DNA of 64,000 bases from Scyliorhinus canicula (lineage: Eukaryota): assembly GCF_902713615.1 (NCBI RefSeq), contig NC_052160.1, forward strand, positions 137,310,737 to 137,374,736, given 5' to 3'. Position numbers and translations under genes: made by a program. Positions 10,264-59,329 of the stretch are shown here, one piece after another. The notes below the pieces were generated by a model. The model saw only the letters and a list, made by a program, of their open reading frames with translations. It was not told the origin of the DNA and did not search any database. Every line of letters starts with the position of its first letter. Position 1 is the stretch's first letter.

Positions 10264-10287
10264 AACTAACGCTGATTATCTGAATAT
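10264..10287 (-). promoter_or_regulatory. Conserved intron-1 element ATATTCAGATAATCAGCGTTAGTT (contains AGATAA), paralog A
   Basis: Identical 24-mer about 20 nt after the leader donor in all three leader exons (also 29345-29368 and 59306-59329). Function is inferred. Confidence 0.6.
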
Positions 10288-10308
10288 CCAACTCTGGTGG
10301 TTACTCAC

Positions 10309-10345
10309 CAGGTAAGGGACAACAAAAAAGTGTCATAATCCACAT
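10309..10345 (-). CDS. Leader (signal peptide) exon of paralog A, MWIMTLFCCPLP, phase-1 donor
   Basis: ATG...CCTG followed by gtgagt. Homologous to leaders at 29288-29324 and 59248-59284, including the following ~100 bp of intron. Confidence 0.85.
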
Positions 10346-10355
10346 TGTTTTTCCT

Positions 10356-10957
10356 TATCATGTGAGAGTACCTTTAAGAAATGGGTGTTTAAGAAATGTA
10401 CCTTCAAGAAATAGGTGTTTATCAGTGATGTCAGAGTATGGGTGGAGCTGGGCTGTCTGTCAGCTTTTTACTTTTGTTTTAGGCTGTTTGCTGCAGGGTG
10501 TGTTTTTTGTTTCGTTTTCAGTGTTGGAGCTGAAGCCAGACCAAGCAGGTGTACTGCTGTTCTCTCTGCCATCAAAAGACTATCTCTTGATCATTTGGTG
10601 AATTCAGAATTATAAATGTTCTCAGTAGTGAATGTAAACCTAATGTGCTTCTATTAAAACATGTTTCTTTTGCCTTCTGGATGTTGTTTGGGAAGTTATT
10701 AAGGATTACTTAGTGTTGTATTCTTTGTGGGTTGTATTTGAATTGATGGTTCCTAAGATTTTCACTGTATGTTTTAAAAAGGTTAACTTGAGTTCATAGA
10801 ATAAACGATGTTTTGCTTTAAATACTACTTTTCCATTTCTGCTGTACCACACCTGTAGAGTGGGCCGTGTGCTCCCCATACCACAATCTAGCAAAAGTTG
10901 TGGGTCAGGTGAACTCCATGATACACTTTGGGGTTCTCTAAACCCTGGCCCATATCA
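10356..10957 (+). mobile_element. Solo LTR inserted in the 5' UTR of paralog A
   Basis: About 600-bp LTR-like block with AATAAA near 10800, ending ccctggcccatatca, and an imperfect flanking duplication (tcct/ccct). Removing it rejoins sequence homologous to the 5' UTR of gene B. Confidence 0.7.
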
Positions 10958-11020
10958 CCCTTCAGAGTTCAGATCAACATTGACTTCAGTGTCTAATGTG
11001 GTAAATGATGCAAAGAATTT

Positions 11021-11055
11021 AAATGAGGAAGCAGAAGCCAGAGCGTAAAACCGCA
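11021..11055 (-). promoter_or_regulatory. Putative PU.1/ETS (AAATGAGGAAG) and RUNX (TGCGGTTT) module upstream of paralog A
   Basis: Motifs occur in the same order and orientation as at 59108-59150 upstream of paralog C. Confidence 0.5.
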
Positions 11056-11749
11056 AAGCAAGCTGATGAAACCTGACCCTGAGGAACATGACTGAATGTC
11101 AGGGAAACAAACAATAACTGCACTAATTTTCTTCGAAAGGTGGAAAATGCTGAAAACACGCGTGGCTACCAGGAGTTGATAATGGCGACTCAAACGAGGT
11201 TTTTAAGATTCCTCGACGCGTCTGTTACCAAAGATTTTTTTTCTGTGCAAAAATAAAATTAAAACTATAAAAATTGCCATTAAACATTTATGTTTTTTAA
11301 AAATGTTTTGGTCTCATTTGCTGATCTGGTTGTTGGTCACGAGTAACAATTCTGTCAGGACGAGGGGGTGTGAACTTGTAAGATTATGCAGACTTTCCCG
11401 CGCTCCATTTATCCACAAATAAGTTATGAGGTAGTTTTCAGGCAGAAAGGGAACTCAATTCACAGAGAGAAGCCTCTGGTAAAAGCAAATTGGATTGAGT
11501 AACAGTGAGGATCCTCATTTGTGCATCGCACACCATCGTCACATTTGAAGAATGAAACCCCGTCCTGTTGCTGAATTAAATGGTGGACGGAATTTCGCAG
11601 CGCTGAGGGGTGCATTCAATGGGAAATCTCGCTGACAGCGGTGGGACTACAAGATCCCGCTGGCAGGCCGCCTCCGCTGCCGAAAAACACAGGGGGGGTT
11701 GCGCAGGAAATCCCGCCCGGAGTTATTTCTTGGCGCCGTCAATGCAATA

Positions 11750-12280
11750 TGTGCTCCATCGATAGCCCCAGTTACTTTTAGGAAGCCAGCAGTCCTGTAG
11801 AATGCAATGGACCTCTCCTTCATCTTCACAGGGAATGTGACAAAAATAATAATCTCCGAAACATTACGCTTTCCTTCCCTGGTGAATGCAGCATTCTGTG
11901 AAATGTTACAAGTCACTAATGCCACGTTGAAAGGACCCAGACCCCCAAAAATTCAGCATTGTTGTGAGTTTAGTTTCCAATGTTAAGGCAGTTTGGCAGT
12001 GACGGTCCGGCTTCAGGTCTTCCTTCAACATTTCGCAAAAGCGTCCCATTGCTTCCTTGCTGAAGCGCACTCTCCTGCCACACATCATCTCTGACATTAT
12101 TTCAGGATGTCCTTTGCCTGTACACTCTTTGGGGCGGTAATCGATTTGCTTCCTCGCCAAGCGGAGATGTAGCCTGACTCTTCTCTCATGATCCGTGCGC
12201 CTACGTTGAAGGATCAAAAGAATTTCAAGGATTTTAAGAAGCCAAGCGATAAGTGTAATTCCCCAGCCGAGGTGAAGCAT
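11750..12280 (-). mobile_element. PIF/Harbinger (HARBI1-like) transposase relic, N-terminal half
   Basis: LNFWGSGSFQRGISDL and FYRTAGFLKVTGAIDGAHIAL match the Harbinger GSFQ and GAIDxTH motifs; frameshifted. Confidence 0.85.
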
Positions 12281-12379
12281 GACTCCAGATTTTGAATCTG
12301 CCCTGGAATCTGCAATACCTGTCAGAGAGATAGTTCACATTAGCTTATATTGCGTATATTAGCTAAGCATTAAACTTTG

Positions 12380-12780
12380 CTAAAACATTTGTAGTAATCA
12401 CTGAGGCTTGTAAGGATGGACATGACATCAGGGAGACTCTTAAACAACACAGCTTAAAATACATTGCAAAATCCAAATCAGCTAGGAGGACAGACGTGCG
12501 AACATTAGTATCCCTGAAGGAGTCAATAGCACCTGTATAGAGGCCATAATCATCCGAAACCAACTCCACTGGGCTGTCCATATGCTTAGGATGTCAGTTC
12601 AAGGAAGGATCCCGAGCAAGAGGAGCACAAAGGAAGTTCTTCAAAACGCCTTTGAAGGCTTACATAAAGAAATGGAGCTTAGGCATTAATGCCTGGGAGA
12701 CCTTTGCTCAGAATAGGCCTACTTGGAGGAACCTCCTGATTGAAGGGACACAATTATTTGAGAACATCCGAAAAGGGTAT
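12380..12780 (+). mobile_element. RTE-clade LINE 3' coding fragment
   Basis: NQLHWAVHMLRMS...GSRARG.QRK.FK..LKAYIKKWSLGINAWETFAQNRPTWRNLLIEG resembles the RTE/BovB C-terminal region. Confidence 0.8.
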
Positions 12781-13693
12781 TTCTGCAGTATGCTAATGTT
12801 GGAGTTCAGGGCCAGTTGGTTGGGCATCCTCTTACCATGCAACACAATACAAGTGGAAGGGACAATTCCTGTCTCTTGACCCTCTCTCCCCCATCAATGG
12901 CTTCCACCCTCCACTCTGGGGCTAGCACTCAATGGCCCTAAGGCGTCCGCCCCAGCGAGCTCCTTCTTGGGCCTTCATCGTTTGCATGTTCCAGACTGGC
13001 TGCAGTCCCATCAGCGGCCACTACCCCTGGTGGCGCTGCTGTGACAGAAGTGCTGCCAGCCCTCTGATTGGCTGGCGACACTCGGAAGAAAGACACAATC
13101 CTGGAGGAGGACGGAGGCCAAGACCTTGGGCAACGAACTGCCTGAGCCACCAAAAATTAGCATTGTGGCTTCTCGGGCTGGCAGGGGAAGGCTTTTTAAT
13201 GGCTCTCCAGAGATAAGAGGGTGGTCAATACCTTCACATTGAAACTGAGCCCCAAGGGCAGACAGCACTCGCTGTTTATTATGCACACAACTCCCCAGAG
13301 AGATTTTGTGTTGCTTTGAGCAGAGACTTCAGCATGACGCTCTCTGCAGTTATTCTGCAACATGTTGGAGCAACCCAGGAAACAGTGAGGATCATTAAGC
13401 AATCAGACAGAGCAATCCTCTCTCAGCCACACAGAATCCAAAGACAGGAAATATGAAGCATGAATTCCACTTCAATCAAGTGTTGAAGGAAAATAAAGAT
13501 GGAAAAAATGATACAAAGAGAGAGAGAGACAAAATGTATAGGAAGGAAACCTATATTAATTATTGGAATGTTAAATATATAAAAATCTCTAACATGACTT
13601 AAATTCTGAAGGAATGAGACTCGGATTTTTAGCGTTAAATGTCGCTGACCCTACTGTTAAAATTCCATTACACCTGAATGCATCGGTTATAAA

Positions 13694-14455
13694 GGGCACA
13701 ATTCTCCAGAAAGAGTTCTAAGTGTGGTAGCGAGTGGGAATTGCCGTGAGGTTCCCGGCCCCGAGGCCACAAGGCAGACAACGCTATTCAATGTTAATTG
13801 GTCCATGTAACGAGGCCCCACTGGCTTCTTTCTGCAAATAAAGGCTCGCCAGCTGATTCGCCGGTACCATGCTCGGCAGCCTCCCACTAACAAGGTAGAG
13901 CAGCACTTAAACAGCTCTTGCTCAGCCAACCCCAGCCAGCTCACAACAATGGCACCCAGGAGACCGGCTGCAAGATTCCGGAATGCAGATCTCAGGATGC
14001 AGTGGAGGCCAGGAGGAGTGTCTTGTTTCCCAGAGGGTCCCCTCCGGGGAGGGTCAGTCATGGGGCAGCTAGTGCTGCCTATGACGAGGTGGTAACTAGG
14101 AGGACTGACCTCCAGTGCAGGAGAAAGATCAACGACCTAGACCGGGCAGCACAAGTGAATTGACACCAATGCACCTCCCCCTCACCGGGACCTTTCCTCC
14201 CATGCGAGCATCCACCCCCCCAACTCTCCATGTGACCCCCAAATCTCTATTCAACCATCCTCGCCCTTCAACCCCCCCCCCCCCCCCCAAAACCTTCCTT
14301 CACACCCCCCATCCCACCACTGCGAACCGCGCATGGGGCTCACGTTGCCCTCTCTGTGTCTCCTCAGGAAAAGCTCTCCCACAATCGTCGGGAGAAGGGC
14401 CAGATTGGCGGTGGAATGCCTGACTTAAGAATCCTCACCTCCTTCAGAAGGCCAG
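13694..14455 (+). mobile_element. Harbinger element left end carrying a Myb/SANT-like (NAIF1-type) gene relic in two exons
   Basis: TIR-like gggcacaattctcc at 13694. MAPRRPAARFR..., DAVEARRSVLFPRG...TRRTDLQCRRKINDL, then after a tcctcag acceptor EKLSHNRREKGQIGGGMPDLRILTSF. Confidence 0.75.
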
Positions 14456-15067
14456 ATGAGATGCATCTTTACCAGTAATTAGGTTAGAAGACATCTCGGC
14501 GGAACCATGTGTGAAAAACCTATTAGTGGAAACAGTTTATTTAGATGATTGGGATAACAATGAGGTATACACATGGTCCAACAGACTTGAGAGGGGCAGA
14601 CATCCAAATACCAGAAAGCAGAACCAAAGGGAATAAAATGGTATCATTGCCAGCACCCTCAGAAACAGCCTGGTGGCCAGGTTTACATCTAGCTGCCTGG
14701 AGACAAGAATTACATTTAACAGCCTCTTAAGTCTTCGAGCCAAGGCAGTGCAGAAACCTTCATAAAGGTAGTTTAAATATCTTCAGTGGACCAGGAAAAG
14801 ATTTATCCCAACCATCATCAACCCTGTATTGTGTACTAATTATAAGCTGGATTTAATTCATAGATCTATTTATTTTGGATGTTGTTTGGGTAACGGGTAG
14901 TCTTAAGGAGTTGAGGGATCTTTGATGTATTTTGGAAGTAGGGGTATGTGTGTGTGTTTACTAGTTCCATTACTTAATTATCTTAGCGTGGTATATTCCT
15001 GTTCATGTGTATTTGGCTTTTCTTTAATTTAATAGTCTTTAATTGTTACAGAACAACTGGACTCCTC

Positions 15068-15782
15068 GGCTGGGATTCTCCCTACCCAGCGGGGCGGGGG
15101 GTATTGAGTGGTGTGAACCACTCAGGCATCGGGCCGCCCCAAAGGTGCGGACGTCTCCTCACCTTTAGGGGCCAAGCCCTCACATTGAGGGGCTAGGCCC
15201 GCGCCGGAGTGGTTCCCTCTCTGCCGGCTGGTGGAAACGGCCTTTGGTGCCACGCCAGCCGGGGCTGAAAGGACTTCGCCGGCCGGCGTACGTCCGTGCA
15301 TTCCTCGGAGCGTCAGCGGCTGCTGACGCCATCTTGGCACATGAGCAGGGGAGGGGGTCTCTTCCACCTCCGCCATGGTGAAGACCATGGCGTAGGCGGA
15401 AGAAAAAGAGTGCCCCCACGGCACAGGCCCGCCCGCCGATCGGTGGGCCCTGATCGCGGGCCAGGCCACCGTGTGTGCACGCCCTGGGATCAGATCGCCC
15501 CACGCCCCCCCCCCCCACCAGGACCCCGGCGCCCGCCCGCGCCGCCAATCCCGCCGGTAAGGTCGGTGGTTTAATCCACGCCGGTGGGAGAAGTTTGTCA
15601 GTGGCGGGACTTCGGCCCATCGCGGGCCAGAGAATCACCGCGGGGGGCCCGCCGACCGGCGCGGCGCGTTTCCCGCCCCCGCCGAATCTCGGGTGGCGGA
15701 GACTTCGGGACACGGCGAGAGCGGGATTGACGCCGGCCCCGGGCGATTCTCCGACCCGGCGGGCGGTCGGAGAATCCCGCCC
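15068..15782. mobile_element. GC-rich non-autonomous TIR element (Harbinger-type MITE)
   Basis: Terminal inverted repeats ggctgggattctcc / ggagaatcccgccc, with a hairpin at the right end. Confidence 0.75.
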
Positions 15783-22638: not shown

Positions 22639-23433
22639 CTCTCCTTTAGGAACAGTCTCTGAACAGGTGAACTCCTGGACAACTGGAGAGTTCTGGGAGA
22701 GCACAACGCCTCTTTTGCTGTTTGACAGTTTGTGTGGCTGTCCATAAGAATCCCCCAACTTCAGACCTCCTCTTACCTGTTCGAACCTGCACATTCTGGA
22801 TTCCACACTCCTGTTCTTCCAAAACCTCACTTCAGTTGCGGCACCTGATGATTTTAATGGCCAGCTGCCTCCATGAGTCGCGCATTTGTGAAGATCCGCC
22901 TGATTCGTGTCCCGCTCCCGCAAAGACGGGAAATGCCAGTTTCGGGGTGAAATTCCGGCCATTTCCGGGATTTTCACCAGGACAGAGAGCCTTCAAACCT
23001 GGGTGTCAGGTTAATGCTTCACCTGAAAGGCATCACCAAGCTCTGCGAACCCAACTGGGGGAGGAACATCTGGGCCTTAGTGTCCCTTACTATTACACAG
23101 GAATGTTAGTGTAGATTTTATGTTCCAATCTCTGGAGTGGGACGTGACCCTGTAATCCAGTGATTCAAAGGTGACAGCGCAAGCGCCGAGACCCAACTTA
23201 ACAAAATAACAATAGCGATTGCACATTAAAAATACATTATGGCAGCAAAGTGCTTGGGTACTGATAGTATGGCTCCAAATATCAATGTTTTCTTTCATCA
23301 CAAACTAGCTACTGAACTCTGAATACATTAAGTGGAGAATTTACTCTGTACACTGTGACGAATCTTATTAACATGTTTTTCTTTGTATTAAGCAGTTATT
23401 TGCTGATCAATTTCTGAAATGTTATCTCCTCAG

Positions 23434-23730
23434 TTTCAGGTGCATTGTTGGCTGGAAATAAAGTAACAGGAATTTTGGGAAGAGCGATCACAATAAATTG
23501 TCACCATGATGCATGGTACCAGCAAAACATGAAATATTGGTGGAACAGTTGGACTCGTGAGTGTTCCTATTTAATGAGAACAGATGATCCAGGTAGACGG
23601 AGACGGAGAATGTCAATTACAAATAACAAGACACAAGGAATATTTGTTGTCACTATGGAGAATCCTCGCTCAGGAGGTACAGGATGGTAAGCTGTGGAAT
23701 TGATAAACATGGCCAAGATGAATTATTTTC
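23434..23730 (+). pseudogene. Orphan CD300/pIgR-like V-domain pseudo-exon
   Basis: Acceptor context ctcctcag-tttcag as in the gene B V exon. KYWC has become KYWW, a 1-nt deletion gives TGG TAA instead of TGG TAC AGC TGT, and the 3' end is replaced by Harbinger sequence. No leader exon found nearby. Confidence 0.9.
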
Positions 23731-23960
23731 CAGCTCCTCATCATCCAGATCCTCTCCCCTTTGCATCGGCAGGTTGTGTAGCCTGCAGCAAGCCACTCTG
23801 GGGAGCGCACGGGAACAGTCTGCCAGATCTGTCCAGGCACCAGAACCTCATTTTCAGGATGCCACAGGTGACTCTGGGTTCTGGAATGAGCCTCGTTGTA
23901 CCTTCTTTCACATGGGTGCCATCAGCAACATCTTTTGTGCGTAGCCTTTGACCCTGAGGA
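23730..23960 (-). mobile_element. Harbinger (HARBI1-like) transposase C-terminal fragment
   Basis: GILKMRFWCLDRSG and VACCRLHNLPMQRGEDLDDEEL on the minus strand. Confidence 0.85.
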
Positions 23961-28990: not shown

Positions 28991-29272
28991 GTTGGCCTTG
29001 CCAAAAAGGCTCACAAACCATTAATAAATAAATACATTTCTAGCAGTCACTTTTTCCCCCACAATTTTCTATCCTTCAAAGAAAATAAGTTGGTTTTGTT
29101 GGAATTTCAACATCTTAGTGGTCACATTTCTTTGGCGGGTATGATGCAATGTCACGAGCTGGCTTCCTCCTACCTTCTTCCCCTTTCAAATTCCTCGTAT
29201 TATTTTGATCTGACAGTCATTTCAATGTGGGAGCCAAGAGCTGGGTGACCGACAACAAGTGTTGATCGGAAC

Positions 29273-29324
29273 ATGGCCAGGAAAATAATGTGGATACTGA
29301 TTCTTCTTATCTCGTCTCTGGCCA
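29273..29324 (+). CDS. Gene B exon 1: leader MARKIMWILILLISSLA (alternative start at 29288)
   Basis: Hydrophobic signal peptide; phase-1 donor gtgagt; homologous to the leaders of A and C. Confidence 0.9.
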
Positions 29325-29344
29325 GTGAGTACAGTCAGAGCTGA

Positions 29345-29368
29345 ATATTCAGATAATCAGCGTTAGTT
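29345..29368 (+). promoter_or_regulatory. Conserved intron-1 GATA-containing 24-mer, gene B
   Basis: Identical to 10264-10287 (-) and 59306-59329. Confidence 0.6.
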
Positions 29369-29699
29369 TAAGTCTGGTGTACGGTTTATACGGCACAGAT
29401 GTTTAAACAATTGGAAACAACAGAAGACACAAAATATTGAGCAAAATTATGTAATATTCTGTGGGAAGCCTCGTAACTTTCTTTGTCTATCCTAGTGTAT
29501 CACAGAAATATTTACCTTTATAAAGAAAACTAAAGTCAATTGTAAATTAAAAATAAAGGACGCACTCATTGGGCGGAATGTACTGGCTGCAGCCCAGTAG
29601 GATTGGGATGGGAAGTGGCAGGTAGATCCCGGGAGACGCTTCTGAATGAATTGGGGAATCATCTCAAATTCAAGTTGTTCTTGCTATTCGAAAGGAAGA

Positions 29700-30210
29700 C
29701 TTGCATTTTTGCATCTGACAGTGTTGTCAGAGACCCCTCACATCCAGGCTTTGCCCTCTTCCAGACCCTCCCATCAGGCAGAAGATAATAATATTAATCT
29801 TTATTAGTGTCACAAGTAGCCTTACATTGACACTGCAAGGAAGTTACTGTGAAAATCCATTACAGATACAGAAGTCTGAAGACCCACACACCCAGACTTA
29901 GGAACAGCTTTGTCCCCACAGCTGCCAGACGCCTCAATCACTCTCCCCCTCGGACTGATCTGTTCCCTGTAAGAACACTATTCACGACGCCCTATGCTGC
30001 TCTTGCTCATGTCGTATTTGTTTTGATTGGCCCTTGTTCTCGATTACTTATTTGTCGGTGTACTGTGTACTTTTTCACATGCACTGTAACAATCTACTAT
30101 TCTTTTTTGTCTGCTGTGTACGTACTGTGTACTTTTCCTTGGCCGCAGAAAAATATGTTTCGCTGTACTTCGGTACATGTGACAATAAATCAAATCAATC
30201 AAATCAAAAA
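29700..30210 (+). mobile_element. Rex1/Babar-type LINE 3' end, interrupted by a 70-bp inverted SINE tail (about 29786-29858)
   Basis: DPSHPGFALFQTLPSGRR joins YRSLKTHTPRLRNSFVPTAARRLN once the insert is removed; ends in gacaataaatcaaatcaatcaaatc. Confidence 0.75.
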
Positions 30211-30548
30211 ACATGTTTCACAAGCCCGAGACATCGCAAAGGGCTTGACTGGCAATTACTTTTCAAGTAGCTTTTGGCTTCCTGACTCGAGAGGCGAGAA
30301 TATTATGACTGAGCCATGGTGAACACACTAACGATAGTAACTGTGCTTCAAAGGTAAAATCTTGGCTGTGAGGTGCTTCATCACGTCCTGATTCCATGAT
30401 AAGATTAATTTTTTCCTTTATCGCAGACTTGAATGAATTAAACTGTATTAATATAGGCAGCAAAGGGATTCCTCTGTACGCAGTGTTAGCTTCTTTCAGA
30501 GTGTATTCGTTTCTATTCAGCCTGGTTCCTGAAATGCTGTCTCCTCAG

Positions 30549-30869
30549 TTTCAGGTGGATTGTGGGCAAAGAGCAAAGTCACAGGAGCTGTGGGAAGAAA
30601 GATCACAGTCGCTTGTCACTATACCAGACAATACAAGCAAAACATGAAATATTGGTGCGACGGTCGGACTCGTGAGTGTTCCTATTTAGTGAGAACAAAT
30701 GATCCAGGTGGACGGCTTGGGAGAATGTCGATCGCAGACAACAAGATAAAAGGAATATTTGTTGTTACTTTGGAGGATCTTCGCTTGGGAGATACAGGAT
30801 GGTACAGCTGTGGAATTGATCAACCTGGCAAAGATACAATGTTCGCTGTACGCCTACAAATATTTACTG
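30549..30869 (+). CDS. Gene B exon 2: CD300/pIgR/TREM-like V-type Ig domain
   Basis: 321 nt, phase 1-1, open. TVACHY, KYWCDGRTREC (the extra Cys pair typical of CD300/pIgR/TREM V domains) and DTGWYSCG; canonical ag/gt. Confidence 0.95.
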
Positions 30870-38026: not shown

Positions 38027-41000
38027 ATCTTTTTTTTGAATAAACATTTTATTGAGGTATTGTTTGGTTTTACAACAACGACAAAATAAACAATACACAT
38101 GTCTATCAACATAGTGCAAAAAAAAAGGCTGCTACCTCCCAAGCAGGTCCCACCTTCATTAACCCCCGACTCTAAACTAACCCCCCCACCTTCTGCTGAC
38201 GATTAATTTCCCGCAAAGAAGTTGACGAACGGTTGCCACCTCCGGGCGAACCCTAACATTAACTCTCTCCAGGCGAACTTGATTTTCTCCAGACAGAGAA
38301 AGCTAGCCATGTCCGATAGCCAGGTTTCCGACTTCGGGGGCTTTGAGTCCCTCCAAGCTAATAGTATTAATAGTATCCGTCTCCGGGCTATCAGGGAAGC
38401 AAAGGCCAGAATGTCTGCCTCTTTCTCCTCCTGGATTCCCGGATCTTCCAATACCCTGAAATTCGCCACCTCCAGACTCGGTGCCACCCTTGATTTAACA
38501 CCGTGGACATGGCATCCACAAATCCCTGCCAAAATCCCCTAAGCTTCGGACATGCCCAGAACAAATGGACATGGTTTGCTGGCCCCCCCACATACCTTGC
38601 ACACCTGTCTTCTACATCTGCTCATCCGGGCCACTGTCTTGTGAGCCCGGTCAACAACCTTAAACTGTTTCAGGCTGAGCCTGGCACATGTTGTGGACGC
38701 GTTGATTCTACTCAACGCATCCACTCAGAGACCATCCTCTATCCCTCCTCCTAACTCCTCTTCCCATTTGTGCTTCAGCTCCTTAGTCTGCATGACCTCT
38801 GACCTTCCCTTCTCCCACCCTAACTCTGGAAACTACCCTATCCTGAATCCCCCTTAGCGGTAGGAGCGGGAAGGTTGAAACCTGTCTACGCAGGAAGTCC
38901 CGCACCTGCAGGTACCTAAATTTGTTTCCCCTTGCCAATCCAAATTTTTCCTCCAGCTCCCACAAGCTAGGAAAGCTCCCCTCTATAAACATATCCCCCA
39001 TCCTCTCGATCCCTGCTCTCCGCCATCTCCGAAATCCTAAATCCATCTTTCCCGGAGCAAACCGGTAGTTATTACAAATTGAGGACCAGACCGATGCTCC
39101 CTCCGCTCCCACATGCTTCCTCTATTGCCCCCCGACTCTTAGGGCTGCCACCACCACGGGGCTGGTGGAGTACCGTGCCGACGGGAACGGCAGAGGCGCC
39201 GTTATCAACGCCCCCAAACTGGTGCCCTTACACGAAGCCGCCTCCATCCGCTCCCATGCCGACCCTCCCCCCACCACCCACTTCCTGATCATGGCTATAT
39301 CCGCCGCCCAATAATAGTTACTGAAGTTTGGCAGCGCCAGCCTGCCCTCTCCCCAGCTCCACTCAAGCAGTCCCTTTTTTACTCGCGGGGTCTTGCCCGC
39401 CCATACAAAGCCGGTGAGTACCTTATTGACCCATTTAAAGAAGGACCGCAGAATAAAGATGGGGAGACACTGGAACACAAACAGGAATCTCGGAAGGACC
39501 GTCAACTTCACCGTCTGGACCCTCCCAGCTAGTGACAACGGGAGCGCGTCCCAACCCCGAAAATCGTCTTTCATTTGATCTACCAGACGGGCCAGATTAC
39601 GTTTGTGTAACCGTTCCCATTCCTGCGCCACTTGGATGCCTAGTTACCTACAACTTCCCCCCCCCACTCTAAACGACAGCTCCCCCAATCGCCTCTCCTG
39701 TCTCCTTGCCAGGATCGCGAACATCTCGCTTTTCCTCATATTTCGTTTGTACCCCGAAAACCGGCCGAATTCCCCCAGAATCCTCATGATTCTTCCATTT
39801 CCCCCACTGGGTCCGACACATACAGGAGCAGGTCATCTGCGTAAAGTGAGACTCTGTGTTCCATTCCTCCCTGGACCAACCCCTTCCAGCCCCTTGAGGC
39901 TCTCAGAGCAATTGCCAGCGACTCTATAGCTAGCGCAAACAACAGCGGGGAGAGGGGGCCTCATCCCCTGCTTCATCCCCCGGTGTAGCCTAAATAGTCT
40001 GTTGTCGCCCTATTCGTCCGTACACTCGCCACAGGAGCCTGATACAGCAACCTGACCCAGTCAATAAAGCATTGTCCAAATCCGAACCGTCCCAGCACCT
40101 CCCACAAATATTCCCATTCTACTCGATCAAAAGCCTTCTCTGCGTCCATTGAAACCACTACCTCCACCTCCCTACCTTCTGGGGGCATCATGATCCCATT
40201 TAGAAACCTCCCTACATTGGACACCAACTGCCTTCTCTTAACAAACCCCGTCTGGTCCTCCTCAATCACATCCGGAACATAATCTTCAATCCCAGAGGAC
40301 AGAATTTTGGCCAGCAGTTTGGCATCCATATTCAATAGGGATATCGGCCTGTAGGACCCACACAGCTCCAGATCCTTGTCCCGCTTCAGGATCAGCGAGA
40401 TCGTGGCCTGTGACATCGTTGGGGAAGCACCCCTCTATCCCTAGCTTAATTGAATGTCCTCATCAACAGCGGCCCCAATATCCCAGAGAACGTTTTGTAG
40501 AACTCCGCTGGGTACCCGTCCGGCCCCGGGGCTTTACCCGCATGCATGGTGCTCAGACCCTCCACCATCTCTTCGATCCCAATCAGGGCTCCCAGCCCTT
40601 CTACCAGCTCCCCGTCCACCTTCCGGAAATTCAGCCCCCCGAGGAAGTGCCTCATCTCCTCTGGCCCCGGTGGGGGTTCCGACCCATACAGCCTACTGTA
40701 AACCTACTTAAATGCCTTATTCACCCTACCAGGTTCCTATCTCCATCCTTTACTTTCCCTATCTCTCTGGCTGCCTCCCTCTTTCTAAGCTGCTGTGCAA
40801 GCATTCTGCTGGCCTTCTCTCCGTGCTCATAGATCACCCCCCTCGCCTTTCTCAGCTGTTCCATCGTCCTCCCTGTGGTTAACAAGCCGAACTCCGCCTG
40901 CAGCCTCCGTATTGAGATCTGCTCCTCTCTAACCACCGCCTTCAGTGCCTCCCAGACCAGCGCTGCTGAAATTTCCCCCGTGTCATTGACCTCCCGGTAA

Positions 41001-43190
41001 TTCTGAATACATTTCCTCAGCCACCCGCACACCTCCTCGTCCGCTAAAAGCCCCTGTCTAACCTCCAGTGCGGGCGCTGGTTACCGTCTTTACTAACCTG
41101 TAGGTCAACCCAGTGCGGGGCATGGTCTGAGATTGTGATCGCCGATAACTCCGGGTCCACCACCCCCGTCAGTAAAGCCCTGCTCAGAATAAAGAAATCA
41201 ATCTGGGAGTACACTTTATGCACGTGTGAGTAGAAGGAAAACCACTTTACTCTTGGCTGCCCAAAGAGCTTGACCGGTCTAAACCAGGGTCAATAACTGT
41301 TTTGAAGTCCCCTCCCATGACCAGCTTATGCAAATCCAGGACCGGTATCTTCCCCAGCATCCTCTTTATAAACTCCAGATCGTCCCAATTTGGCGCATAC
41401 ACATTTACTAATACCACCTGCCCCCCCTCCAATTTCCCACTGACCATAATGTACCGGCCTCCCACATCCGAAACTATTCTTCCCGCCTCAAACACCATCG
41501 CTTGTTGATCAGGATTGCGACCCCTCTAGTCTTTGAGTCCAGTCCCGAATGAAAGACCTGTCTGACCCAGCCTTTCCTTAATCTATTCTGATCAGTTACT
41601 CTAAGGTGCGTCTCCTGCAACATTACCACGTCCGCCTTCAGTCCCCTCAGATGCGCGTACATGTGTGCCCCCTTGACCGGCCCATTGAGCCCTCTTACAT
41701 TCCAGATGATCAGTCGAGTTGGGGAGCTCATCGACCCCCCCCCCCCCCCCCTTCACCAATCAGCTACCCCTCTCTTGGGCCAGTCACCAGTCACCAGCCC
41801 CGCGCCCTGCGCCTCCACCGGCCCGCCCCCAAGCAGCCCGTGCCCCACGCCTCCACCGGCCCGCCCCCAAGCAGCCCGTGCCCCACCGGCCCGCCCCCAG
41901 GGAGTCCGTGCCCCACGCCTCCACCGGCCCGCCCCCAGGGAGTCCGTGCCCCACGCCTCCACCGACCCTCCCCCAAGCAGCCTCCGTCCCCAACTTCCTC
42001 TCTGTCCCTCAGCAACAGTCCCTCCCTCATAAGCAGAACATTTCCCCCCTCCCCCTAGTAACAGCACTAAGTAAATCAACCCCTTTGATAAGCCTAACTT
42101 CTGTTCACCCCCCACTACGCTTCCGTACGCTAGCCCGTCCAGGTTGGTGGCCCTCGCCCCTGGCGCCAGACAATCTCCCACCTGTTGTCCCTTCCCCACC
42201 TTCTCCCCCCCGCTCATACATGCATATTCAAATGAAAAACAATCCCAACACAATTGTCCGACAGAGATGAGAAAAAACCCCAAGTTGAACTCAAACGAAG
42301 GAAAAGGTCAAGCAAAAGATCCAGCATCTGAACAAACACACCTCCATCCCCCAACAGTGCAAATGCAAACTTTGACCTCACTCAGCTCTGCAGCTGGTCC
42401 CAGATCCATACAGCAGGCATTACACATAATGTCCGAAAAGAAACCCCCACAAGAAACAAGAAACCTTTTATTTGCAAAACATAAACGTAACAGCCAAATT
42501 CCAAATTCAAAGTTCTCAGTCCGACACCAGTCCTTTCCTTTTCCAAAGTGAAGCGACTCAAAATAGAAATGTTGCTCCTCGTATGTGACCCAGAGGTGGG
42601 CTGGGTCCAACAGCCCGAACTTCACTTTTTTCTTGAATAGGGTCGACCTGATCTGATTGAATCCCACTCTTCTCCTGGCCACCTCCGCACTCAGGTCCTG
42701 ATAGATCCGCAGGATACTGTTGTCCCATTTACAGCTCCGTGTCTGCTTGGCCCACTGTAAAATATGCGCCTTATCCAAATACCTGTGGAATCTCACCACC
42801 ATTGCCCTTGGGGGCCTCCCATTCGCGGCTTCTTCGCGAGCGCTCTGTGAGCCCTGTCCACCTCCAAGGGTCGGGGGGATGCTCCATCCTCCAGCAGCTT
42901 CTCAAACATTGTCTGCGATATTGCCCCAGCGTCTGCTCCTTCGGACCCCTCCGGGAGCCCAACGATCCTCAGGCTCTGCCGGCGGGACCTGTTCTCTAGG
43001 TCCCCCACCTTCTCCAGGAGCCTTTTCTGCTGATCTCTCAGCATCCCCACCTCCAACTCCACCGCAGTTTGATGTTCCTCCTGTTCAGCCAGCGCCTTCT
43101 CTGCTTTCTGGATCGCCCGATCTTGGGCATCCAGTCTAAGCTCCAGCCGCGAAATTGCCTCTTTAATCGGGTCCAAGCAGTCCTGCTTCT
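38027..43190 (-). mobile_element. L1/Tx1-clade LINE, near full length but broken (ORF1, APE endonuclease, RT), antisense in gene B intron 4
   Basis: ORF1: LENRSRRQSLRIVGLPEG and EVDRAHR. ORF2: WNVRGLN..MLQETHL, SYRPISLLNMDAKLLAK and SMDAEKAFDRVEW. Poly-T on the + strand at 38030. Frameshifts and deletions present. Confidence 0.95.
41799..41985. repeat. GC-rich tandem repeat (unit about 37 bp, about 5 copies) in the L1 inter-ORF region
   Basis: ccgtgccccacgcctccaccggcccgccccca recurs with variants. Confidence 0.85.
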
Positions 43191-44267
43191 GCGATGGGAA
43201 TTTGTTCCCATTTAGTTAAATCCCTCGGGCACAATTCTCCCGAAAGGGAACAAAGTTCCCTCGCGAGCGCGTTCAGCCACGTGTCTCCCGGCACTCGTAG
43301 TGTGCGACCACGATTTGTATCGTGGGGAGCTCAGCTTGCGTGCGCAAGAAGACCAATCGGGTTGCCATTTTTAAAGGCCAACGATTTCGATGAATCTCAC
43401 AATAAGTTTCGAGTATCGCGGATTGCGCAAGGTGCCTCTCGGCTGATTCAACAGCCTCGTCATGTGACCTAGTTGGGTGCAACGAGGCCGGTACATCGCA
43501 TTGTCATTAGTCATTGTTTGGGAGAATTTCACCCATTGTGTTTAGTAACAAAGTTGCTGTGGAAATTCAGATAAAGAAGTCAACATTTTTTGTTTGCCTC
43601 CCCTCAGATGTTGCAGTTTTCATTATTCATGTGAATCACTTCACCATGCACTCAACCTCATGGAGATGTAGCTGTCACACCCCAGTCATGGCAGATTTCC
43701 TGTGTGTTCTGGAGTATCTCTGACAGGGACATTTCAATCACTGTCATTGTCTCCTTCACGGTTGTCGGGTTTTACAGGTTGTCCCCAAACTGAGAAGGTT
43801 AAAGGTCGTCTGCTTCCATTTGGTTAAGAATTTCCTGTGAGGAGATGCACCAGGGAATTGTGGGATGATAAAAACAGGAAGTTCTGGAAAAACTAAGCTC
43901 CCTCAGCATCTGTCGAGAGAGGAACAGAGTTAACATTGAGTTGAATATGACTGTACTTCAAAACAGTGTTAGATGGTGTTATTCTGAGTTCCTTAGTCAC
44001 TGAACAGATACGGCACCATTGCTATATTGCACCATGAGAGATATGCTGTGGAAATCTAATTAAATTTGCTCCATTTGATCTTTATCTAATAATCATGAAA
44101 TTGATCAGTAAAACGTTAGTTTATTTTTCCAGCGGATATGCCTTGTCTCTGCTGCTTTACGTTGCTACAATACACTAAGGTCACAGCAGAGACAAGTGAT
44201 TTACGTTTCAAACGTGAAGTAGTCTTATTTCCTGCAAGTAATGTTGTAATCTTTCCGTTTTCCTCAG

Positions 44268-44358
44268 TTACATTATCTGGGATGTGATCCGCTGGGGGCT
44301 CTTTACTCTGCTGGTGATTTGTGCTGTTTCAGTCACATGGTGTGCAGGAAAATCTAAG
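44268..44358 (+). CDS. Gene B exon 5: transmembrane with Arg (SYIIWDVIRWGLFTLLVICAVSVTWCAGKSK)
   Basis: 91 nt, phase 2-0, ttttcctcag acceptor and gtgagc donor. In frame with the stalk exon; paralogous exon at 178-268. Confidence 0.92.
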
Positions 44359-51675: not shown

Positions 51676-51734
51676 AAACAAATACAAAACTTTGAAACCA
51701 GTTACCATTTAATTTAACGTTTAACTTTAGCAGC

Positions 51735-53580: not shown

Positions 53581-53599
53581 CTTTTTGTTTTACAATTTC

Positions 53600-55195
53600 G
53601 GATTCACTAAAGGGAAATCATGCTGGACAAATCTTTTGGAATTTTTTGAGGATGTGACCAGTAGTGTGAACAAGGGTGAAACAGTGGACGCTCTGTATCC
53701 GGAGGCTTTTGACAAGGTCCCACACACGAGATTAGTGAGCACAATTAAAGGGGCAGCACGGTAGCACAAGTGGATAGCACTGTGGCTTCGCAGCGCCAGG
53801 GTCCCAGGTTCGATTCCCGGCTTGGGTCACTGTCTGTGCGGAGTCTGCACGTTCTCCCCGTGTCTGCGTGGGTTTCCTCCGGGTGCTCCGGTTTCCTCCC
53901 ACAGTCCAAAGACGTGCAGATTAGGTGGATTGGCCATGATAAATTGCCCGTAGTGACCAAAAAGGTTAGGTGGGGTTATTGGGCTATGGGGATAGGGTGG
54001 AAGTGAGGGCTTAAGTGGGTCGGTGCAGACTCGATGGGCTGAACGGTCTCCTTCAGCACTGTCTGTTCTATGTCTATATTCTATGGTATTGGGGGTAATG
54101 TATTGACGTGGATAGAGAACTGGTTGGCAGACAGCAAACAGAGAATGGGAATAAATGGGTCCTTTTCAGAGTGACTAGTGGGGTATCGCAGGGTTCAGTG
54201 CTGGGACCCCAGCTGTTCACAATATACATTAAAGATTTGGGCAAAGGAATTGCATGCAATATCTCCAAATTTGCAGACGACACTGAGCTGGAGGACAGTG
54301 TGTGCTGTGAGGAGGATGTAAAGAGGCTGCAGGGTAACTTGGACAGGCTGGCTGAGTGGGCGAATACTTGGCAAATGCAATACAATGTGGGTAAATGTGA
54401 GGTTATCCACTTTGGTGGCAAAAACAGGAAGGCAGATTATTATCTGAATGGTGGCTGTTGAAGAAAAGGGGAAATGCAACGAGTCCTCGGTGCAATGGTG
54501 GAACAGTCGCTGAAGGATGGCATGAAGTACAGCAGGCGGCGAGGAAAGCTAATGGCATGGTGGCCTTCATAGCGAGAGGAGATGAGTATAGGAGTAGGGA
54601 TGTCCTGCTACAGTTATACAGGGCCTTGGTGAGGCCACACTTTGGGTATTGTGTGCAGCTTTGGTCTCCTAGTTTGAGGAAGGACATTTGTGCTATTGAG
54701 GGTGCCCAGCGAAGGTTCCCCAGACTAATTCCCGGGATGGCAGGACTGACAAATAAAGAAAGACTGGATCGACTGGGCTTGTACTCACTGGAGTTTAGAA
54801 GAATGAGAGTGGATCTCATAGAAACATAAAATCCTGATGGGACTGGACAGACTAGATGCGGGATGAATGTTCCCGATGTTGGGGGCGTCCAGAATTAGGG
54901 GTCACAGCCTAAAAATAAGGGGTCAGCCATTCAGGACTGAGATGAGGAAGAACTTCTTCTCTCAGAGAGTTGTGAGGTTGTGGAATTCTCGACACAGAAA
55001 GCTGTTGGGGCCGGTTCATTGGATATATTCAAGAGGGAGTTGGACATGGTCCTTGCGGCTAAAGGGATCAAGGGGTATGGAGAGAAAGCGGCAGTGGGAT
55101 ACTGAATTTGCATGATCAGCATGATCTTATTGAATGGTACTGCAGGCTTGAAGGGCCACATGGCCTATTCCTGCCCCTATTTCCTATGTTTCTAT
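53600..55195 (+). mobile_element. CR1 LINE RT and 3' end, interrupted by an HE1-type SINE (53750-54083)
   Basis: KGKSCWTNLLEFFEDVT, AFDKVPH, VTSGVSQGSVLGPQLFTIYI and SKFADDTEL; tail ttcctatgtttctatgttt. Confidence 0.93.
53750..54083 (+). mobile_element. HE1-type SINE
   Basis: A and B boxes plus tail. Confidence 0.9.
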
Positions 55196-55476
55196 GTTTC
55201 GATCACATTTGATTGAATTTTTTGAGCACGTGACTAAGTGAGGGTAGAGTAGTTGATGTTGTTTAAATGGATTTAAAGCCTTTGACAAGGTGTCACATGG
55301 GAGACTTATAAAGAAGGCAAATGCATATGGGATACAGGGGAACTTGATAAGGTGGATTCAAAGCTGGCTGAGCTGTAGGAAACAGAGGGTGATGACAGAC
55401 GGCTGCTTCAGTGATTGGAAGCCAGTGTACCACAGGGATCTGTGCTGGGTCCCCTATTATTTGTCATTTATATAAA

Positions 55477-55822
55477 TGGCAGCACGGTAGCATTGTGGAT
55501 AGCACAATGGCTTCACAGCTCCAGGGTCCCAGCTTCGATTCCGGCTTGGGTCACTGTCTGTGCGGAGTCTGCACATCCTCCCCGTGTGTGCGTGGGCGTC
55601 CGCCGGGTGCTCCGGTTTCCTCCCACAGTCCAAAGATGTGCAGGTTAGGTGGATTGGCCATGATAAATTGCCCTTAGTGACCAAAATTGCCCTTAGTGTT
55701 CGGTGGGGTTACTGGGTTATTGGGATAGGGGGAGGCGTTGACCTTGGGTAGGGTGCTCTTTCCAAGAGCCGGTGCAGACTCGATGGGCCGAATGGCCTCT
55801 TTCTGCACTGTAAATTCTATGA
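55477..55822 (+). mobile_element. HE1-type SINE
   Basis: A and B boxes; tail gggccgaatggcctctttctgcactgtaaattctatg. Confidence 0.9.
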
Positions 55823-56353
55823 AATATAAATTACATAGATGACTATGTCAGTAAGTTTGCGGATGGCACAAAATAGGCCGGATGATTAACAGTGAGGCTG
55901 GGAGTCGGGTTACCGGAAGATATGGACAGAATGGTCAAATGGGCAGAAAGTGGCAGAAGAAATTTAATCCTGAAAAGGTGTGAGCTGTTAAACTTTGGAA
56001 GGAGCAATTTGACAAGGAAATATTCAATGAATGGCACCACACTGGGAAGTCCTGAGGAACAAAGAGACTTTGCCGTGTTTGTAAATAGATCTCTGAAGGC
56101 AGAAGGGCAGGTTAATAGGGGGTGAAAGAAGCATTTGGGACACTTGCCTTTATCAATTGTGGCAGAGATTACTAAAGCAGGGAGGTCATATTGGGAGTTA
56201 TATAGAACTTTTGGTGAGGCCACAGCTGGAGTACTGTGTGCAGATATGGTCGCCACATTATAAGAAGGATGTGATTGCACTGGAGGGGGTGCAGAGGAGA
56301 TTCACCAGGATATTCCCTGGGTTGGAGCATTTTAGTTATGAAGAGAGGTTGGA

Positions 56354-56745
56354 TGTCTTGTGTTGCAACTGGATGCAGCTTAAACCAAAAGATACTCCAG
56401 ACCTTGAAGTTAGTTCAATCTGATTTATTGAACCAGTAGCACAGTTAGCACAGTTCACTATGAGTTCGACTCTCTGCTAACCTAAGTGTGGTTACTCTGT
56501 CTGACTGAACCAGACTAGCTCTTAGCCATGTGCTGGAGGTGTGATACTGTACATACACCCTGACTCACTCTGTAGATATTCATCAGTGGAAAGAGGCGGA
56601 GTGTGAGGGCCTTGTGCCTTTTATAGTGAGATACCACCCCTGAGTGTCCTGCCTGCTCATTGGTCATGTCCTGTTCTCTGTGTTCATTAGCTGCCTGTCT
56701 GTACCTGTCTGCATATCATTATCTGCATGTCTGCATATCATGACA
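56354..56745 (-). mobile_element. Solo LTR, same family as 7432-7842
   Basis: Near-identical by eye to 7465-7842; ends catgaca. Confidence 0.85.
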
Positions 56746-57999
56746 AGGTAGGCTTCAGTTGTTTTCATTGGAACAGAAGAGACTGAAGGGCAACCTGATT
56801 ATGGTTGACGACCAATGTAAAAAAAGACTTGAACTCTGAAAACAATGGTTTCAAAGTTGTTGCACCTCATGGCGGTTTAACTGCAAGAAAAATGTGTTGC
56901 TATTCTCAAGGTTGGTGTGTGACAGAAACATGTGAATATGTACAATAGGTGCTAATTACTAAATGAAGGGTTGTGTTTGCAACTGGGAGAAGAAGCTCTG
57001 CTTTGCTACAGGGTTTGTTGGAGGTAAACATCATGAATGTTGATCCATTATTGGGCTCCATGTGATACAGGTGGAAGAAACAGTGAACAGGAGAACAGGC
57101 TTCATACGAAGCACACCGTGAGTAATTCATCCCAGACACAGTATTCACTAAACTGGATGGAATCGAATGAATCATAAAGCAAAGGGAAGGCCGTAACTGA
57201 GTGAAAATGAATGGATTCAACTCCCCTGTCAGAAAAACCTGCGAGGCTTAAGCTTCATACGAAGACAACGCTGCTTGTAACTGCGCACCACCCTGTACTG
57301 AGCTGAGAAAGGATAACATATTGTCCTGAGCATGGGTTTCTAATGGGAGTGTGGTCCCTGATGGCCTGGCATTACAGTAAGGGGTGAGCCTGCCCCCACA
57401 TGGCTGATGGGGCTTGAGGCCAAAGGTCAGTGTGGGAAAACCCATTTCCAGAAACTGCCAGCCAACCCAATGGCCCAAAGCCTTCTGGCCCCAGTGGCGC
57501 CAAAAGGAATGGTGGCCTTTGATGGAACTGCAGCAAGTTAGGGCTGGGTTGGTTTGACAGTGGAACGGAAGTCATCTCGATCGACACAGGGCTCGAAAAA
57601 GAGGATCAACGTGTAAACAATGTGTTATTCACCAGGCTCACTCACCACCAACTACACAACTCCATGCCACGGGGCGTTGAGCACACCTATCCTCACCTGG
57701 GAACTGAATCTTCCTCCCAGTTACTCAGTCACAATTTCCATACAGCCAGAGTCGTCTCTCTGAGAATTGAGAACCTTTTCTGCCTGAAATCTGCCTCACA
57801 GCCTGTTTGTGGATCTGGTGAGTAGAGTAAAGGGTGTTCATCTACCGCACATCCAGGAGCTCAGATCTCCTCATCCTGACAGAATTGTTGCTCAGCGCGA
57901 CTAACAAGATTCACATGAAGCAAACAAAAACAAAATATGAATAAAGCTCTGTTTCGTTAGAGAAATAATTCTGAGCAGGAAAAAAGTACTTGTTTTATT

Positions 58000-58208
58000 A
58001 ATCATAAACTTTTATTGTCACAAATAGGCTTACATTAACACTGCAAAGAAGATCCTGCAAAAAGTCCCTAGTTTCCACAATCCGGCACCTGCTCAGGTAC
58101 ACAGAAGGAGAATTCAGAATTCTCAGCTATTACTGGAATTGAACCTGCGCTGCTGGTCTTGTTCTGCATCACAAACCAGCTATCTAGCCCACTGAGCTAA
58201 ACCAGCCC
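58000..58208 (-). mobile_element. Short tRNA-derived SINE (family of 6080-6269)
   Basis: ttattgtcacaaataggcttacattaacactgca tail; head ends aaaccagccc. Confidence 0.75.
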
Positions 58209-58368
58209 TGCTTCCAGAGGCGTTCATGGGATCTTGATAACAATGGAGGAGGGCCTGTTCTAACTCACCCCCCAATTAATTATAAAACTTAGCCTGGGTC
58301 AATATTACCCATTGATTCGGAGATTTTAACACCTTGGTTTCAGAATTTTACATACTGTCAGAGATGTT

Positions 58369-59038
58369 GGGTGGGATTCACTGTCGGCCAACGGCGAAAT
58401 TGCAATTGGGCAAAGAATAGCCTCCGATCCAAAATTGCGGTAGGTGCTGGCTTGACGCCAAATCGGCACCCCGAAAATGGCGTAAATGCGTCACTCGTCG
58501 CCCGGCTTTTAAGCACCGTTGGCACATCATTAGCGGGCCTGACCGTCCATTCTCCGGGGCCTCCGGTATTCACCGGCACTGATGGGCCGGGTTGCTGACG
58601 GGGCGGTTCACTTGCGGTCTCAGCTGTCGGGAACCCGGTGTGGTGGCTGCGGACTGTGCCCCGTGCCACCACAGCCAGCCAGGAGCCGTGTTGCTGGCCG
58701 GGGGAGGGCTTCTGCGAGGGCTGAGGGCACCTGGTGGGGGATGGCCAGGGGGTGGCCAGAGGGTGGCTAGCGGGACAGTATTTGGCAGGTTGGGATCCGC
58801 GCACGGCCAGTGCCATGTTTTACAGCGCGACAGTTGCAGGTCTTCGCCGTACTCATGCGCGGCCATGGACATGGCCACTCCACAGCCGTTATTGTCGTGG
58901 GAGCCGCAAGTTTCACTCGGTGAAGTTGCTGGCCCACCACAGGATCGGTGAGGGTTCAGCGCCGATTTTTCCATCGGAAAACGCTGCAGTTCCCACGCGG
59001 GCATCAGCACTTAGCCTCCAAATCGGAGAATCCAGTCC
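58369..59038. mobile_element. Harbinger-type MITE about 70 bp upstream of the paralog C promoter motifs
   Basis: Ends gggtgggattcac / ggagaatccagtcc; homologous to 31905-32638. Confidence 0.7.
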
Positions 59039-59107
59039 AATTACTTTTATTCTTTTGCTAAATATAACTGACAGACGTTCAAGAAGCCAGATTTTGGGCA
59101 GCCTTAC

Positions 59108-59150
59108 TGTGGTTTTATGACCCGGCTTCCTGTTTTTGTCTTCCTCATTT
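59108..59150 (+). promoter_or_regulatory. Putative RUNX (TGTGGTTT), ETS (GGCTTCCTGT) and PU.1 (CTTCCTCATTT) module, paralog C
   Basis: Motifs lie about 100-140 bp upstream of the ATG; the RUNX and PU.1 motifs are conserved in paralog A. Confidence 0.5.
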
Positions 59151-59247
59151 CAATTCCTTGTACAATTTATACGAGTCACTTATTTCAGTGTGAGAAAGAG
59201 GGGCTGGGTGACTGACGACAAGAACTGATCTGATCTCGAACAAGACC

Positions 59248-59284
59248 ATGCGGATTCTGATTCTTCTTATTTGTTCTCTGCCCG
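59248..59284 (+). CDS. Leader exon of paralog C, MRILILLICSLP, phase-1 donor
   Basis: 37 nt followed by gtgagt; clear homolog of the gene B leader and flanks. Downstream exons were not found in the window. Confidence 0.9.
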
Positions 59285-59305
59285 GTGAGTAACAGCCAGA
59301 GCTGA

Positions 59306-59329
59306 ATATTCAGATAATCAGCGTTAGTT
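59306..59329 (+). promoter_or_regulatory. Conserved intron-1 GATA-containing 24-mer, paralog C
   Basis: Identical to the copies in A and B. Confidence 0.6.

Follow-up and report, generated by a model that had tools for sequence, protein, structure and literature searches.

A conserved leader-intron element of MDIR receptor genes in the catshark Scyliorhinus canicula, a candidate promoter-proximal control sequence

The window analysed here is a stretch of 64,000 nucleotides (nt) of contig NC_052160.1 of the catshark Scyliorhinus canicula, in which one 24-nt sequence, ATATTCAGATAATCAGCGTTAGTT (the 24-mer), occurs three times, each time just after a leader exon of the modular domain immune-type receptor (MDIR) family. 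The question raised by this locus is why a piece of intron should be identical in three paralogs (A, B and C) whose adjacent coding leaders differ, and what it may do there. The original prediction had taken it for a family-wide cis-element, either an enhancer or a splicing regulator, under stronger constraint than the signal peptide. Judging from sequence comparison, the block that holds the 24-mer is probably a gene-control element. Innate immune-receptor families turn over fast and their regulation outside mammals is almost unknown; an old motif kept beside the leader and lost in some paralogs gives a handle on how such a cluster is wired, and for an immune gene family that evolves fast a regulatory footprint of this age would be unexpected.

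The 24-mer and its block in the window

The 24-mer has three exact matches in the whole window (Table 1), with no fourth match at up to 3 mismatches, where 0 were expected by chance. A short leader-type exon, ending in phase 1 with a GTGAGT donor, precedes each copy, and the intron start of the 24-mer is +22 in A and C and +21 in B. The claim of three identical 24-mers about 20 nt past the leader donors was thus confirmed, as was the CpG said to be kept within them (it is present as GCG). The difference between the leaders of A and B, given as about 17 of 37 nt, is exactly that; A and C differ at 12 of the 37 positions and B and C at 7. That the copies lie in intron 1 of all three genes holds for B from RNA contigs and for C through the annotated leader of protein P0171, while for A the placement comes from homology only.

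In the alignment of A, B and C from the ATG to +115 (160 columns, 93 of them invariant), an invariant run of 24 or more was obtained in 2 of 100,000 column shuffles (P = 2e-5). Between B and C alone the exact run is 33 nt long and holds the 24-mer (P = 6e-4, again by column shuffling). The identity of the 24-mer exceeds what the general similarity of the block would give. These values also speak against a passive similarity without function, whereby recent duplication or conversion among clustered paralogs in a slowly evolving genome would have left the copies alike, an explanation that we regard as improbable.

Conservation peaks in the 24-mer, within a block of about 135 nt which begins at the leader donor and ends sharply. 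This block is continuous with a conserved exon 1, the two together making a module of about 300 bp. Similarity among the three catshark copies spans the ATG to about +115 to +135 and then stops, and B and C are additionally similar over about 130 nt 5′ of the ATG. Elsewhere in these genes, blastn found similarity only between the transmembrane exons of A and B and between the two V exons (23.4 and 30.5 kb). The only 31-mers common to B and C fall in the 33-nt run. In two catshark species, with one DNA run for each, k-mer depth over 29340-29407 of gene B was 37 and 45.6, whereas the single-copy flanks had 4-6; since this is 8-10 times the flanking depth, about 8-10 copies sharing exact 31-mers are suggested per catshark genome. 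A transposable element was considered and rejected, given the ~8-10 copies by k-mer depth and their constant place beside a leader. The dissimilar sequence that follows +115 in copy C may, by eye, be a tRNA-like SINE head; ARAGORN reported no tRNA at the block end of this copy.

In contigs from two RNA-like runs of S. canicula, 29324 is spliced directly to 30549 (GT..AG), so that 1224 nt are skipped. These contigs reach upstream to 29144 and carry the V exon of gene B without any difference, and RNA depth is zero over 29340-29747 in both runs. Because of this junction and the lack of depth, the 24-mer of gene B lies outside the mature mRNA. On reading through from the leader a stop is met within 7-12 codons in all copies read, so the element is both spliced out and non-coding. 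A coding extension or an alternative donor is excluded, because in-frame stops follow the donor and the skate reads ATTAGT in place of the core GTTAGT.

Conservation and loss in other elasmobranchs

Leader modules were taken from loci of the thorny skate (L001), whale shark (L002 and L003), smalltooth sawfish (L004) and sharpnose sevengill shark (L005), so that the sample consists of 12 modules, three from the catshark and nine from the four other species. The element is retained in 7 of the 12, namely catshark A, B and C, two sevengill copies, one skate copy (Ar_2) and one sawfish copy (Pp_2). Both sevengill copies keep 23 of the 24 positions, the sole change being CpG to TpG, and the sawfish (GCAGTCTGATAATCAGTGTTAGTT) and thorny skate (ATATTCTGATAATTAGTATTAGTT) copies keep 20 of 24 each. 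The segment begins at +22 in all four retaining copies outside the catshark, and of the 7 retaining copies catshark B alone has a gap of 20 nt between donor and 24-mer, the other 6 having 21 nt. Their common core, TC-WGATAAT-YAG-YR-TTAGTT, is always at +26..+45. A search with its degenerate 20-mer form (TCWGATAATYAGYRTTAGTT) gave 3 matches in the 64-kb window and another 4 in 187 kb of loci belonging to three further species; every match sits at +26..+45 of a leader donor, with none elsewhere in the searched DNA. A metagenome scan for the degenerate 24-mer gave 0 matches, as expected.

Identity between catshark B/C and sevengill is 0.66-0.72 upstream of the ATG, 0.82 in the leader, 0.83 over +1..+21 and 0.96 in the 24-mer, and more distally 0.67 over +46..+100 and 0.56 over +101..+125. 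For catshark A/B/C against the retaining skate and sawfish copies, the values are 0.42-0.45 upstream of the ATG, 0.65 in the leader, 0.77 over +1..+21, 0.81 in the 24-mer, 0.45 over +46..+100 and 0.19 (about random) beyond +100. Among all retaining copies the between-species identity of the 24-mer is 0.79-0.96, and beyond +100 it is 0.14-0.24 in shark-batoid pairs; past about +135 the intron is unalignable in every comparison, giving the block a sharp border. When one copy from each of four species (catshark C, sevengill, skate and sawfish) is aligned, invariance extends furthest over the donor (-1..+6), a hexamer in the leader (-25..-20), GATAAT (+29..+34) and TTAGTT (+40..+45). The split between sharks and batoids dates back a few hundred million years. 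As the core is kept across this split while the remaining intron is unalignable, we infer, on strong evidence, purifying selection on the core in the retaining copies.

A search for the 24-mer in other elasmobranchs, as proposed with the original prediction, has found related copies in sevengill shark, sawfish and skate, and with 23, 20 and 20 of the 24 positions kept abroad at the same donor distance, the view of a constrained non-coding element and not a by-product of recent duplication is upheld. The comparison with the flanking intron came out divided: conservation is higher than in the neighbouring sequence, and over a deep divergence, in the retaining copies but not in the five copies without the element.

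It may be noted that catshark B and C are not young duplicates of each other. B and C show an identity of 0.68 in the exon-1 region and 0.81 in the intron block, with 67% protein identity, and against sevengill they give 0.68-0.74 and 0.75-0.81; as their mutual distance equals that to the sevengill copy, B and C are old paralogs. This counts against passive similarity, as do the sharp stop near +135 with the rest of the intron unalignable, and the survival of GATAAT and TTAGTT in catshark, sevengill, skate and sawfish. On the other side, three states (-17 T, +38 C and +69 G, of which the latter two each create a CpG) are common to A, B and C and present in no other species' copy, which is a signature of concerted evolution. 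Also the two sevengill copies are 93-100% identical throughout and so are recent duplicates, and copy A resembles a gene relic yet keeps the element. The three catshark-only states hint that gene conversion helped to make the catshark identity perfect, on top of selection.

The element is lost in 5 of the 12 copies (three of whale shark, one of skate and one of sawfish). In whale shark copy Rt_1 it is lost by deletion, and in Rt_3 and the pseudo-copy Rt_2 AATAAT and TTTATT stand in place of the hexamers. Skate Ar_1 and sawfish Pp_1 read GTGAYCAG and have transposon insertions inside the block. In every copy without the element GATAAT and TTAGTT are mutated together. Four of the five (Rt_1, Rt_3, Ar_1 and Pp_1) have the ATG, a canonical donor and the downstream V exon intact and are annotated genes. 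The element is consequently not family-wide, as had been claimed, 5 of the 12 sampled copies being without it. It divides the family into genes with and without it, which predicts differential expression of the two groups.

Two side observations concern these foreign loci. At positions 2414-2560 of whale shark L003 there is a pseudo-leader, in which the ATG has become ACG and the donor GT has become GG; it was copied recently from the module at L003 10001, and the stretch homologous to the 24-mer is identical in the two (24/24). In thorny skate L001 the public model of P0097 (3001-38653) takes in leader modules at both 3023 and 21655 and V exons at both 7065 and 33204. Probably two genes have been fused in this model, or else it has alternative first exons, of which just one comes with the element.

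A proposed promoter-proximal control element and its rivals

The reading that we favour, on the strength of these comparisons, is a promoter-proximal regulatory element which acts on DNA and is a candidate binder of a GATA factor, and we hold it to be about evenly poised between right and wrong. The ~135-nt block and exon 1 would then form the promoter-proximal module of MDIR genes, the core of which would have been held by purifying selection in one paralog subset since before the shark-batoid split and have decayed in some other paralogs, which nevertheless carry gene annotations. The element would most likely be a downstream promoter or first-intron enhancer site that gives its genes expression in particular cell types. 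It would be modulatory and not a basic requirement for expression or splicing, because the genes without it remain annotated and intact, a state that also fits a modulatory lineage-specific enhancer. One module at the DNA level fits as well, because the flanks in exon 1 and the 5′ untranslated region (5′UTR) are also conserved, including the ETS-like GGCTTCCTG/CTTCTTCCTC.

A GATA factor is the leading candidate binder from the motif match only. WGATAA, a refined GATA consensus (PMC3401466), is present in all 7 retaining copies, as AGATAA in catshark A/B/C and both sevengill copies and as TGATAA in Ar_2 and Pp_2, so the consensus in either form (WGATAR or WGATAA) is found wherever the element is retained. 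The 5 other copies are without it and read AATAAT, GTGAC or GTGAT. No CTCF, RUNX, Myb, IRF, FOX or homeodomain-dimer motif, looked for by eye, is conserved across the retaining copies. Were a GATA factor to bind, the element would represent an unusually old lineage-specific control of paired activating and inhibitory receptors.

Several points weigh against this reading. Less than 1% of WGATAA motifs are occupied in cells (PMC3401466), because of which the GATA assignment is only a lead. The retaining subset is defined partly by the element itself. Over all seven independent non-catshark copies, conservation is 0.77 in the leader, 0.57 in the 24-mer region and 0.55 in the 5′UTR, so that the claimed constraint stronger than that on the signal peptide stands in the catshark and the retaining subset and falls when all copies are taken. 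Selection acting through the gene of copy A does not fit, because A keeps the element without a detectable V or C2 exon or a conserved promoter. Lastly, the block starts exactly at the 5′ splice site with a fixed spacing, which a splicing role at the RNA level would explain equally well.

Such a role, in which a splicing factor would bind +22..+45 and tune the use of the leader donor across a long intron, is a possible but rather unlikely alternative. The first intron is indeed filled with transposons and measures 1.2 kb to >11 kb. The core is 20-21 nt from the donor in 7 of 7 retaining copies, and at +21/22 to +44/45 the element of these copies lies within the ~100 nt of a splice site that is typical of splicing enhancers. 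Its orientation relative to the gene is constant, and conservation among all copies peaks at -15..+9 around the donor (0.84 over the seven non-catshark copies). The UAG-containing UUAGUU could serve as an hnRNP-type site. Against it, Rt_1, Rt_3, Ar_1 and Pp_1 are intact annotated genes without the hexamers. By inspection there are no G-runs, UGCAUG or U-rich tracts, and no significant RNA structure was found (z = -0.04 to -0.93). Also there is no excess of pairing with the acceptor-proximal 300 nt (z = -1.5 to +0.6), and conservation that extends through the 5′UTR is unexplained by a signal linked to the donor. A long-range RNA bridge to the 3′ end of intron 1 was rejected, the duplex energies of core and block with the last 300 nt in 4 copies being no better than those of shuffles.

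The folding results bear also on a small or structured RNA derived from the intron, for example a 3′-tailed mirtron or another hairpin that begins at the donor, which we find scarcely credible. The block does lie at the 5′ end of the intron, and RNAalifold gave a hairpin at +11..+71 with two compensatory pairs among the three catshark copies; but its consensus energy is just -11 kcal/mol, and the copies, when folded one by one, give different structures that do not surpass shuffled sequences (z = -0.27, -0.93 and -0.04). The block has no Rfam match, the one chance-level match (SNORD59) being outside it, and no RNA contig lies over 29340-29747. Neither a stable conserved structure nor a known RNA family was thus seen.

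In copy A the leader has diverged, and neither a conserved promoter nor immunoglobulin (Ig) exons were found, yet the 24-mer is intact. This may be due to recent disruption or conversion of the copy, or else the block may work in the cluster independently of the gene beside it. Two further readings take up such a role. By analogy with the switch promoters of KIR and Ly49, the block may serve as an antisense or bidirectional promoter element within the intron and so determine the choice of receptor genes that a cell expresses from the cluster, a view that we consider highly improbable. The setting, a multigene cluster of activating and inhibitory receptors, would suit it, as would the conservation of the element together with promoter and exon 1 and its persistence in the orphan copy A, which lost its own promoter and Ig exons. 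The RNA contigs, which are unstranded, show no signal over the block and speak against it. A bolder form, also quite improbable in our estimate, makes the block an autonomous GATA-responsive switch, possibly bidirectional or antisense, that chooses the lineage or cell in which an MDIR subset is expressed and is kept even in the decayed copy A. If true, cartilaginous fish would have a counterpart of the switches that govern KIR/Ly49 variegation, and no older cis-regulatory logic would be known for any family of paired activating and inhibitory receptors.

Among known systems, the promoter-proximal control element that we favour may be set beside the +9.5 element of Gata2, an E-box-GATA composite that acts as an intronic GATA-dependent enhancer (PMC3401466, PMC3865483, PMC4643771). 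Both are intronic with a WGATAA core kept over deep time, the shark hosts being leukocyte receptors. The likeness extends in part to a CTG half-site that precedes WGATAA by 7 nt in 5 of the 7 retaining copies, catshark A and skate Ar_2 having TTG instead, but the shark element has no CANNTG E-box and so lacks the composite arrangement of an E-box ~8 bp upstream. It also lies 20-45 nt from the exon-1 donor and not kilobases into the intron, and its second invariant hexamer, TTAGTT, is without counterpart.

It resembles downstream promoter elements and intron-mediated enhancement in its fixed orientation and position, at least ~200 nt past 29144 (the 5′-most transcribed base seen), and in being contiguous with the conserved exon 1 and 5′UTR. 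Intron-mediated enhancement, however, usually has no single short motif, whereas the shark element has two hexamers invariant over hundreds of millions of years. With intronic splicing enhancers and silencers it shares a place at most 50 nt past the donor and a fixed spacing, but of the TIA-1 U-tracts, G-runs, Rbfox UGCAUG and hnRNP A1 UAG sites none is present except the UAG in UUAGUU, and paralogs without the element keep their leaders, donors and V exons. Like vertebrate conserved non-coding elements it is non-coding, alignable between sharks and batoids and sharply bordered; unlike them it is paralogous (~8-10 copies per catshark genome), lost in some copies, short (a core of 20-24 nt in a block of 135 nt) and part of a fast-evolving immune family instead of a developmental gene. 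On these features it qualifies as a small paralogous conserved non-coding element, and it appears most like a promoter-proximal intronic enhancer with a candidate GATA site. In the searchable literature we found no description of a conserved leader-intron element. The 2006 description of MDIR in the clearnose skate, as cited in PMC3031540, is one of the proteins.

Host genes and other features of the window

The host genes are ordinary members of the already annotated MDIR (CD300/pIgR-like) family, encoding as these do CD300-like V and C2 domains with a charged transmembrane segment or tails with immunoreceptor tyrosine-based inhibitory motifs (ITIM). Over its V exon gene B matches P0009, 'polymeric immunoglobulin receptor-like [Scyliorhinus canicula]', at 100% identity, and clearnose-skate MDIR2 and MDIR5 are among its closest named relatives. 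Gene B is complete within the window, with leader, V, C2, stalk, transmembrane and last exon equal to those of P0009, and its exon 1 carries the conserved GGCTTCCTC...CTTCTTCCC motifs. The leader of copy C, MRILILLICSLP, is the start of P0171, an inhibitory-type protein with ITIM-like tails, and the V exon of this gene lies outside the window. Genes B and C thus show the features of MDIR/CD300-like receptors. Striking conservation is also seen throughout the family in the leader peptide, MW.LILLICSLPVSGALWA.

Table 1. Positions of the 24-mer copies, their blocks and the exons of the host genes in the window
Feature	Position	Strand	Remarks
24-mer copy A	10264..10287	-	intron +22..+45; orphan or probably decayed leader module
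24-mer copy B	29345..29368	+	intron 1 of activating MDIR gene P0009; +21..+44; spliced out in RNA contigs
24-mer copy C	59306..59329	+	intron 1 of inhibitory MDIR gene P0171; +22..+45
Leader donor GT, A	10308-10307	-	
Leader donor GT, B	29325-26		
Leader donor GT, C	59285-86		
Conserved intron block A	10174..10308	-	identity 0.74-0.79 to B, C and sevengill copy Hp_2 over +1..+100
Conserved intron block B	29325..29459	+	~135 nt; alignable to paralogs, sevengill and whale shark copies
Conserved intron block C	59285..59398	+	alignability ends near +115; dissimilar sequence follows
Copy A leader-like coding sequence	10309..10345	-	MWIMTLFCCPLP
Copy A transmembrane-like exon	297-178	-	
Gene B exon 1	29144..29324	+	5′UTR and leader; extent as RNA contig reaches
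Gene B leader coding sequence	29273 to 29324		ATG at 29273, inner ATG at 29288
Gene B V exon	30549..30869	+	intron 1 acceptor; RNA joint with 29324
Gene B C2 exon	~36700-37035		
Gene B stalk exon	37647-37760		
Gene B transmembrane exon	44254-44358		contains Asp/Arg
Gene B last exon	49283-49330		
Gene C leader coding sequence	59248..59284	+	MRILILLICSLP

Copy A differs from this pattern. No V or C2 exon was found between its leader and its transmembrane-like exon, so it does not have the make-up of an MDIR host gene, and the sequence 5′ of its ATG is unrelated to the counterparts in B and C. It is probably a decayed gene. Its transmembrane segment is without the charged residues of gene B (D to V and R to H). 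Of sampled 31-mers from its leader region (10180-10480), a fraction of 0.11-0.15 was found in RNA-like runs of three organisms, unplaced. A solitary CD300-type V exon at 23433-23789 (forward strand), with about 60% protein identity to the V of gene B and a frameshift near 23687, is a pseudo-exon, since neither a leader module precedes it nor a C2 exon follows it; a relaxed blastn search likewise returned no fourth leader module for it.

Within the exon-1 module, the ETS/PU.1-like pair GGCTTCCTG ... CTTCTTCCTC (29161-29185 and 59126-59150 in the window) is kept in 10 of the 12 leader modules, in five species, and in gene B it lies within transcribed exon 1, as the RNA contig reaches 29144. Also in the 5′UTR, GCTGGGTGACTGACGACAAG (59203-59222 in C, 29241-29260 in B) is 20 nt identical between catshark C and sevengill, which is the longest exact run of this pair and exceeds the run inside the 24-mer. 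At 29278, in codon 2 of gene B, the window has C and all four runs examined (two RNA-like and two DNA, of two species) have A, a silent change that is either a private allele or an assembly error.

Repeats make up other parts of the window. In intron 1 of gene B, 29680-30223 is a very high-copy transposable element, whose k-mer depth sums to 1e4-1e6 in the DNA contigs from two catshark species and which is abundant in RNA contigs too. The intron between its stalk and transmembrane exons holds, at 38200-43200 on the reverse strand, open reading frames resembling by eye the remnants of a LINE endonuclease and reverse transcriptase, in a region that is GC-rich with a strong negative GC skew. The long open frames seen on both strands at 62304-62700 come from a tandem array of a G/T-rich 18-bp unit and do not represent genes, and at 984-3178 a 22-bp unit, GAGTGGGACTAGCTGAGTTGCT, is repeated in tandem about 100 times with 95% matching.

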